A stretch of DNA of 64,000 bases from Hydrolagus colliei (GCA_035084275.1 CM068771.1:4092001-4156000), one strand, 5' to 3'. Shown: positions 57,401 to 58,482, counted from the first letter of the stretch. The notes: generated by a model not told the origin, from the letters alone. Program-made: numbers and translations.

Positions 57401-58092
57401 TTGCTGCTAGGCATATAGAGGCCCCATCCTACTTAACCAATCTACTCTCCCCCTACACGCCCACCCGGACCCTCCGTTCAACAGGACTTGTCCTGCTCCA
57501 AGCCCCCCGCCCGAACCGCCCCACCATCGGAGGCCGGGCCTTCAGTTTCTCCGCTCCCACCCTATGGAATGCCATCCCTCAATCCCTCCATTTCGTCTCT
57601 TCCCTTTCCTCTTTCAAGGCCGGTTTGAAGACTTTCCTCTTCGATCGTGCCTTTTGTTCCACCCCGAACTCTTTTACCTCCCCTTCGTGTTTCACCCCTT
57701 CCCAAACACTCCCCTCCCAGCTCGGGTCACACGCCTCCTGTTCAGCGCCTTGGGACGTCCTCCCGACGTGAAAGGCGCTCTATAAATGTAAATATAAAAT
57801 TGTTGTTGTTGTTGAGTGAGGAAACTTGCCTCACTTTTCGCCCTGTGTGTGTACAGTCAGCGTATGACTGCCCCTGACTGTTTCTCTCTCTCGTGTCTTC
57901 TCCCCACAGCTGCCTCACTCCCTGCGCAGCCTCGACGAAGTCACATACGCAGAGATCAACTGGACCCCGATGAGGAGACCCAACCCACAGCCCAGGGCTC
58001 TGTGTGCACACACTGACTACATACACACTGAGTACAGCAGCATCCGAACTGACACACTGACACACACACACACTGACACACACACACACTGA
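45429..58092 (+). CDS. Single IgV-domain type I membrane receptor (CEACAM-N/CD2/HEPACAM-like) with ITIM and ITSM, about 278 aa; join(45429-45495,46330-46707,48359-48499,50746-50813,57910-58092)
   Basis: Leader, V domain, TM and two cytoplasmic exons, all with canonical splice sites and compatible phases (1,1,1,0). Joining the last exon across 7 kb is inferred, and extra small exons are possible. Confidence 0.75.
46330..46707 (+). CDS. Ig receptor V-set domain exon lacking the canonical B-F disulfide
   Basis: ttttgacag|..VTGFVKHDVLLPV..LWEC..YKGRVTLSAENASLLIRDLRLNDTGIYRVTV..VNLTV..|gtaagg; 378 nt, phase 1-1. Confidence 0.9.
48359..48499 (+). CDS. Ig receptor stalk + transmembrane exon
   Basis: tctcacag|..HIVGLVTAGIALLCLSIIGLFLICLRRRIK G|gtgagt; uncharged TM followed by RRR. 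Confidence 0.88.
49850..50420 (+). mobile_element. L2 LINE 3' fragment
   Basis: [14 protein letters not shown].., L2 terminal hairpin, (GTT)n. Confidence 0.85.
50746..50813 (+). CDS. Ig receptor cytoplasmic exon
   Basis: ccccattag|..CSKSDGNWTPEETELHKRSLTR|gtaagt, phase 1-0. Confidence 0.75.
54130..54760 (-). mobile_element. CR1 LINE 3' portion
   Basis: [63 protein letters not shown]. Confidence 0.92.
57420..57810 (+). mobile_element. Young L2 3' end, near-identical to 1750-2120
   Basis: Shared 3' UTR text and terminal hairpin. Confidence 0.85.
57910..58092 (+). CDS. Ig receptor terminal exon with ITIM (VTYAEI) and ITSM (TEYSSI)
   Basis: Strong acceptor tcttctccccacag|[63 protein letters not shown]. 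Confidence 0.75.
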   Translation: MPHSLRSLDEVTYAEINWTPMRRPNPQPRALCAHTDYIHTEYSSIRTDTLTHTHTDTHTH

Positions 58093-58482
58093 CACACACT
58101 GACACACATACACACTGAGTACAGCAGCATCNNNNNNNNNNNNNNNNNNNNNNNNNNNNNNNNNNNNNNNNNNNNNNNNNNNNNNNNNNNNNNNNNNNNN
58201 NNNNNNNNNNNNNNNNNNNNNNNNNNNNNNNNNNNNNNNNNNNNNNNNNNNNNNNNNNNNNNNNNNNNNNGAGTACAGCAGCATCCGAACTGACACACTG
58301 ACACACACACACACTGACACACACACACACTGACCCACACACACTGACACACACACACACAATGACTGAGTACACACAATCTAAGTACACCAGCATCCGA
58401 GGTTGCAAAAACACACACACACATTCACTGAGTACACGAGCATCTGAACTGACACACATGTGGAACACACACATTAGCATTC
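58012..58482 (+). repeat. CA-rich minisatellite containing repeated ACTGAGTACAGCAGCATC units
   Basis: Units at 58027, 58114, 58271 plus degenerate copies to 58444; interrupted by gaps. Confidence 0.9.

Follow-up and report, generated by a model that had tools for sequence, protein, structure and literature searches.

The receptor gene and its surroundings

The window, by which the whole stretch of 64,000 nucleotides under analysis is meant, is a eukaryotic draft assembly with eight runs of N and many SINE-like repeats. An unannotated receptor gene (45429–58092, plus strand), consisting of five exons with canonical AG/GT splice sites and compatible phases (1, 1, 1 and 0), was found in it, and its predicted product comprises 278 aa. 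The features of the gene are as follows:

45429–45495, plus strand: exon 1, with the ATG and the signal peptide (MDGGRLRIRSLLSSLLILASLR); GTGAGT donor, phase 1
46330–46707, plus strand: exon 2, V-set Ig domain, phase-1 acceptor and donor; 68% identity in tblastn of Callorhinchus milii protein P0001
48359–48499, plus strand: exon 3, stalk, TM helix (IVGLVTAGIALLCLSIIGLFLICL) and RRRIK stop-transfer; from sequence, splice sites and tblastn of P0001
50746–50813, plus strand: exon 4, short and cytoplasmic, entered in phase 1 and left in phase 0
57910–58092, plus strand: exon 5 (last), coding part, 60 codons and TGA; acceptor ctccccacag at 57900–57909
57940–57957, plus strand: ITIM-type motif VTYAEI; identical in C. 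milii P0001, VIYVEM in shark P0012
58027–58044, plus strand: ITSM TEYSSI, the sole copy before the first stop; its counterparts at the same place are TEYTSI (C. milii) and TEYTSV (shark)
58090–58092, plus strand: stop codon TGA, supplied by the frame-1 ACTGAC at 58088
58677–58682, plus strand: AATAAA, possible polyadenylation signal (motif search)

Exon 1 was located by scanning for an ATG, a hydrophobic core and a donor, and was aligned to the N-terminus of P0001. Exon 4 was the best of three candidates in a phase-constrained exon scan: neither of the others had so strong a polypyrimidine tract (17/20), and its donor, GTAAGT, is perfect. It lies within a block that is colinear with exon 4 of C. 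milii (L001 9378–9476). The coding part of exon 5 shows 68% identity to the tail of P0001 and can be aligned to the last exon of C. milii at the DNA level. The complete model and the 277-aa product of C. milii LOC103190391 (P0001) share 65% identity over 98% of the model, and the C. milii protein maps back to the same five exons of the window in tblastn; a tblastn search of the model against the window returned no paralogue. From 42.5 to 58.1 kb the window is colinear with the gap-free C. milii locus (L001) at 66–77% DNA identity, introns included, and in both RNF5 ends shortly upstream of the receptor. The window therefore holds the orthologue of the C. milii locus in another chimaera-type species and is not a second copy of the C. 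milii genome. Skipping of exon 4 (junction 48499/57910) would cause the last exon to be read in another frame (AASLPAQPRRSHIRRDQLDPDEETQPTAQGSVCTH, then a stop at 58013–58015 provided by another ACTGAC); the resulting tail, which is devoid of both ITIM and ITSM, matches the predicted C. milii isoform P0005. If the AATAAA at 58677 were used, a 3′ UTR of about 590 nt (nominal coordinates) holding the repeat array described below would be possible. Across the repeat region the minus strand gave only GT-repeat ORFs running through N, and Rfam gave only far sub-threshold miRNA-like matches, situated on the nearby CA/GT tract.

The RNF5 orthologue (37030–42654, plus strand) has its RING exon near 37030–37233, another exon near 41135–41240 and its last exon at 42472–42654, the last being about 88% identical to the C. 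milii copy at the DNA level, with indels. Two G-rich minisatellites (29 nt ×12.5 and 25 nt ×10) lie inside this gene at 37276–37894, and a C-rich/CA-rich satellite of about 2 kb with 35–36-nt units and a (CA)261 tract, three assembly gaps and a strongly skewed composition was noted at 27050–29203. Downstream of the receptor, a butyrophilin-like gene (62031–62867, plus strand) was recognised by an IgV exon (62031–62387, V-set, 2e-11) and an IgC exon (62478–62867, PF22705 C2-set_3, 2.3e-24). Four tRNA genes (Val-CAC, two Ala-CGC and Ala-TGC) were reported by ARAGORN, at 4354–4427 (minus), 12245–12315 (plus), 18978–19049 (minus) and 36240–36312 (plus). Together, RNF5, the butyrophilin-like gene and the tRNA genes resemble an MHC-type neighbourhood. 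In the C. milii locus, a V-domain-like fragment (L001 5695–5793, minus strand; 61% identical to residues 82–114 of P0001) lies upstream of the V exon and may be a pseudo-exon.

The domain encoded by exon 2 (Pfam PF07686 V-set, E 3.5e-9) lacks the canonical B–F cysteine pair: LLPVFY stands in the B strand and GIYRVTV in the F strand, and the lone cysteine is that of WEC. A regular expression for canonical Ig Cys-Trp-Cys exons matched only the downstream butyrophilin-like V exon, and the receptor V domain was found via ORF listings. Its best sequence matches in the PDB include the N domains of CEACAM6, 1 and 5 (E 1e-4 to 1e-3), over residues 73–110 only, and one multi-domain nanobody construct outscores these; the Pfam match to 2B4 had an E value of only 0.14. 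ITIM and ITSM (TxYxxV/I) were used as defined in the literature (PMC5112662), and VTYAEI, with I at +3, matches the broader ITIM consensus. The ITSM tyrosine lies 29 residues after the ITIM tyrosine. The corresponding distance of 87 nt is the same as the repeat period described below, the sequences between are unrelated, and the agreement is probably a coincidence. If CEACAM1, PD-1 and G6b-B are a guide, this pair of phosphotyrosines, with its spacing of 29 residues, would be expected to dock the tandem SH2 domains of SHP-1/SHP-2. The region is best explained as the 3′ terminus of a gene for a type I inhibitory immune receptor of a holocephalan-like cartilaginous fish, with a CEACAM-like V domain, a TM segment, one ITIM and one ITSM.

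Three receptor families were compared with the model. The CEACAM family shares with it the N-terminal V-type domain without intradomain disulfide and the phase-1 Ig and TM exons, and the short tail exons with ITIM and ITSM resemble the CEACAM1-type long tail; CEACAM3, 4, 19 and 21 serve for comparison as members with a single N domain. Homologues bear automatic NCBI names of the same kind (‘CEACAM4-like’ in a shark, ‘CEACAM5-like’ in a duck), and CEACAMs have been reported in cartilaginous fish (PMC5112662). Unlike CEACAMs, the window receptor has no IgC2 domain, its identity to any named CEACAM is only 25–35%, and its surroundings do not match the CEACAM/LRC-type region: within the window, the neighbours RNF5 and butyrophilin-like are MHC-type, with no CEACAM cluster.

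PD-1 and G6b-B (MPIG6B) resemble the model in having one V domain, one TM segment and an ITIM followed 25–29 residues later by an ITSM. The gene of G6b-B lies within the MHC class III region. G6b-B is an ITIM and ITSM receptor (PMC3501490), and Y223 and Y248 of PD-1 are jointly bound by SHP-2 (PMC7078208, PMC6994217). No sequence relationship of the window receptor to PD-1 or G6b-B was detectable. PD-1 has the canonical V disulfide, whereas the window receptor does not, and membership in the PD-1 group was rejected on this ground. The SLAM/CD2 family offers V domains without disulfide and TxYxxI/V switch motifs whose number varies among paralogues; however, SLAM receptors have a V–C2 ectodomain, whereas the window gene has no C2 exon between 46708 and 48358. 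SLAM/CD2 membership was rejected, since no C2 domain occurs in the window gene or in the 277-aa C. milii P0001 (V only).

The repeat array and its assembly gaps

The repeat region begins within the last codons of exon 5 and is composed as follows:

58019–58105, plus strand: repeat unit 1, 87 nt, with ITSM core, (CA)n/ACTGAC spacer and stop (repeat search families D1/D2)
58106–58131, plus strand: repeat unit 2, first 26 nt, then gap; second TEYSSI in frame
58132–58270: assembly gap, 139 N, estimated length
58271–58357, plus strand: post-gap unit with its own TGA (58331–58333) in its EYSSI frame; 93% over 86 nt
58358–58482, plus strand: degenerate distal units in two frames (TEYTQS at 58365–58382, SKYTSI at 58380–58397, and TEYTSI)
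58483–58635: second assembly gap, 153 N

The initial annotation had described tandem repetition of an ITSM-coding unit within a CA/ACTGAC tract, and this description proved correct, the tract lying where a genuine receptor gene ends. The second, identical TEYSSI (58114–58131) lies 87 nt after the first in the same frame, as had been stated; the TGA at 58090–58092, attributed to an ACTGAC unit (it is the one at 58088), is indeed the sole in-frame stop between the two; and the copies listed beyond the gap (EYSSI at 58271, TEYTQS at 58365, SKYTSI at 58380 and TEYTSI at 58427) were all found again, the last directly abutting a TGA (58427–58447). Running back from 58131 against 58044, the 26 nt of unit 2 are identical to the start of unit 1, inside which a TRF sub-repeat (16 nt ×3, 58052–58099) is located. 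With up to two mismatches, the 15-mer GAGTACAGCAGCATC has six occurrences in the window, where 0.12 would be expected; all but one, with three exact copies among them, lie in the repeat region, and exact matches of ACACACTGACACAC within the window are restricted to that region. The motifs beyond the gap fall into two frames, with five stops in the frame of 58271 and one in the frame of 58272. Head-to-tail units of 10–100 nt above chance, together with the existence of orthologous arrays, characterise the region as a minisatellite. A coding VNTR has a unit that is a multiple of 3 and a frame that stays open across units; here the 87 nt keep the frame, but a TGA is present in each full unit in the frame of its own motif.

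Units 1 and 2 are contiguous over 113 nt (58019–58131) with no N, so that a tandem duplication is certain in the assembled sequence. At the first gap, the 15 nt (GAGTACAGCAGCATC) before the 139 N are identical to the 15 nt after them, and 58271–58334 agrees with 58030–58093 at 64/64 positions, which argues that the assembler stopped and restarted at the same repeat register. Unit 2 and the post-gap unit may thus be one unit, or further units may be hidden in the gap. As 139 is 1 mod 3, the post-gap EYSSI is nominally outside the coding frame, the gap length being only an estimate. The array may also continue into the second gap (58483–58635).

That a short-read assembler broke and restarted in the repeat, and that the true array has fewer units (in the extreme case with unit 2 and the post-gap unit being the same unit), is a possibility to be taken seriously, although we do not favour it. 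The same 15 nt at both contig ends, the perfect match of the post-gap sequence to the continuation of unit 1 and the eight gaps in a window rich in repeats speak for such an artefact; at least one tandem duplication is nevertheless assembled within one contig, the scaffolder's estimate of the gap is positive, and the gap-free assemblies of two other species carry arrays of 4–5 units at the same place. The artefact bears on copy number only and not on the existence of the repeat, and it is compatible with the reading of the array as a 3′-UTR minisatellite.

Reading frame, slippage and the arrays of other species

The predicted protein ends 15 residues past the ITSM, within the CA/ACTGAC microsatellite. 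Depending on the frame, ACTGAC reads TD, L or stop; the five copies between the two TEYSSI lie in frames 0, 2, 0, 1 and 2, and only the frame-1 copy gives a stop. Slippage products were enumerated on the contiguous pre-gap sequence only. A single change by 1–4 dinucleotides in any of the six AC runs gave no product with two in-frame ITSMs (0/45), the stop always being situated 3–25 residues past the first ITSM. Two in-frame ITSMs were obtained in 20 of 540 products of double CA-run changes and in 11 of 126 products of a single deletion or duplication between direct repeats of at least 6 nt; all 11 are in-frame deletions of 12–48 nt that remove the ACTGAC at 58088. The earlier proposal that CA slippage or a change in unit number could remove the stop and give a further motif is thus feasible only by way of such particular deletions or double changes, and the stop is within the unit: each faithful unit has its own TGA, so every added faithful unit closes its own frame. 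As for a contingency switch, the tract does lie inside the ORF (last 15 codons), yet none of the 45 single steps adds an ITSM. The dependence of the stop position on the length of the CA tract, which had also been claimed, was borne out by comparison with C. milii, a 2-nt indel giving tails of 15 residues in the window and 5 in C. milii. CA length sets the length of the Thr/His-rich tail, not the number of ITSMs.

In C. milii, the last exon ends with TEYTSIRAHTH and a stop, five residues past the first ITSM, followed by a gap-free array (about 49 nt ×4.3). Its five cores (TEYTSIR.., TKYTSIR.., TEYTSI-stop, TEYTTI-stop and NEYCLI) lie in frames 0, 1, 2, 0 and 2 with spacings of 49, 43, 49 and 47 nt; TAA or TGA is found in or directly after cores, two of which have ATC-TGA directly after the motif. 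The 2-nt indel is situated just after the ITSM; because of it, the ACTGAC common to both species reads as a stop in C. milii but not in the window, which accounts for the difference in tail length between the two chimaera-type species. Where the last exon is read in the motif frame, as in the predicted C. milii isoforms X1 and X2 and in a cDNA-like entry, the protein always ends after the first ITSM, and the predicted forms P0003 and P0005 contain neither ITIM nor ITSM. Bases that differ between the species (AGC ATC versus AGT ATC) are common to all copies within a species, as would be left by homogenisation or by an expansion of recent date. Most untranslated copies of both species retain the key residues of TxYxxI.

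The next full-length homologue, ‘CEACAM4-like’ of the sevengill shark Heptranchias perlo (P0012), encodes one ITIM and one ITSM in a tail that runs from VIYVEM to TEYTSVRSWCNRANIPV and a stop. Its gene contains GAATATACCAGTG five times, with spacings of 35, 22, 21 and 22 nt and without a CA tract, and this 22-nt tandem array of the ITSM core (L002 25887–26007) straddles the stop codon. The second ITSM unit, read out of frame, supplies both this stop and the final five residues (NIPV and the preceding A), and behind the single TAA two SEYTSV lie in frame. Queries with the entire shark homologue and with its tail alone, in word-based protein searches, gave no further orthologues, so the comparison rests on three species. 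A repeat over the terminal tyrosine motif was found in none of four related receptor genes (C. milii paralogue, Mustelus, Hemiscyllium and Narcine), against three of the three orthogroup members examined (one-sided Fisher probability 1/35); none of the readings considered here accounts for the recurrence of motif arrays at the stop in three cartilaginous fishes. In-frame downstream copies were not in excess of chance (4/9 versus 3 expected). A relative, Mobula birostris P0151, has an in-frame tandem duplication of 27 aa in its tail and thereby TQYAEL twice, a motif that Pristis pectinata P0057 has once.

A length-polymorphic coding array, in which slippage or gain and loss of units would generate alleles with one to several ITSMs and thereby tune inhibitory or switch signalling, had been put forward, and it is considered improbable. 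The multiple-of-3 period with one TGA between two identical in-frame ITSMs, the 11 deletions that would join them, the retained key residues of the untranslated copies, the recurrence in three species and the in-frame duplication in Mobula are all in keeping with it. An in-frame period (chance 1/3) and at most one stop among five ACTGAC (chance about 0.46) are, however, unremarkable; single CA slips do not work, a faithful unit brings its own stop, and the periods of C. milii and of the shark mostly break the frame. Distal copies are closed by ATC-TGA and TAA, and exactly one ITSM is present in each orthogroup protein whose last exon is read in the frame of the motif.

A minisatellite probably running from the last codons into the 3′ UTR

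The reading that we regard as probable is a minisatellite that extends from the last codons of a CEACAM-like ITIM/ITSM receptor into its 3′ UTR, with only the first ITSM translated; the stop and the 3′ UTR of the window species are assigned here by homology. The ITSM core and the CA tract would have been duplicated in tandem by replication slippage or by unequal exchange between CA-rich flanks, giving rise to a minisatellite that starts inside the last codons and extends into the 3′ UTR. Only unit 1 would be translated, and the remaining units would be copies outside the coding sequence, those close to the gene being young and identical and those farther out decayed. As ACTGAC gives TGA in one of three frames, irregular spacing would shut all three frames fast, and a change in CA-tract length would shift the protein stop, and with it the length of the Thr/His-rich tail, at a constant number of ITSMs.

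Three observations are at odds with this 3′-UTR reading. The second TEYSSI is in frame behind a single stop, and one in-frame deletion could fuse the copies; arrays with differing periods are present in 3/3 orthogroup members and 0/4 relatives, which neutrality does not obviously predict; and a tyrosine motif has been duplicated in frame in the manta-ray relative. A more speculative proposal, to which we would give only a small chance, is that the ITSM array is no neutral by-product but a maintained reservoir: in this receptor lineage of cartilaginous fishes, the terminal unit with the switch motif would undergo amplification at the stop codon again and again, and lineages or alleles would gain or lose translated ITSMs. 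Such changes would proceed, at similarly long odds, via in-frame deletion or unit exchange, the periods being 87, about 49 and 22 nt in the three species. These species are separated by up to roughly 400 million years.

Translational recoding, i.e. read-through of the UGA (followed by C) or a frameshift on the CA tract that yields a minor isoform with a second ITSM, is very unlikely: an in-frame TEYSSI does follow the single UGA-C stop after 8 codons, and the shark has its two in-frame SEYTSV behind a single TAA, but C. milii has a second in-frame stop (TAA) 5 codons past the first and its next core out of frame, no read-through context or structure of a known kind was found, and the presence of some frame-0 downstream copy in all three species has a chance of about 0.2.

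The 3′-UTR minisatellite may be set beside known motif-bearing VNTRs, such as the tail exons of the chicken BG genes, of 21 nt each (PMC4046983), the repeats of PER3 (54 nt), DRD4 (48 nt), MUC1 and GP1BA and the phosphotyrosine-motif segments of Helicobacter CagA. With these it shares head-to-tail motif units arising from slippage or unequal exchange and, in principle, a changeable number of motifs. In the known VNTRs, the units are in frame and translated, and their copy number varies between alleles or strains, whereas the window array has a stop in each unit and one known haplotype, and most periods of its kind break the frame. A motif-bearing minisatellite at the stop codon has, to our knowledge, not been described for CEACAM genes. 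The literature yielded no description of the receptor gene, nor of a motif-bearing minisatellite in ITIM/ITSM receptors.

The locus adds a CEACAM-like gene for an ITIM/ITSM receptor, lacking annotation so far, from MHC-type surroundings in a chimaera-type fish, and provides a clear case in which a microsatellite determines how far a signalling tail extends at its C-terminus. It is also a warning that motif counts across an assembly gap are unsafe. If the arrays of the three species were polymorphic in the number of translated motifs, they would represent repeat-driven variation in inhibitory-motif dose in vertebrates, and, if the array were indeed a maintained reservoir, the strength of an inhibitory signal would be rapidly evolvable, as might be called for where pathogens exert pressure on a receptor of the CEACAM1-like kind.
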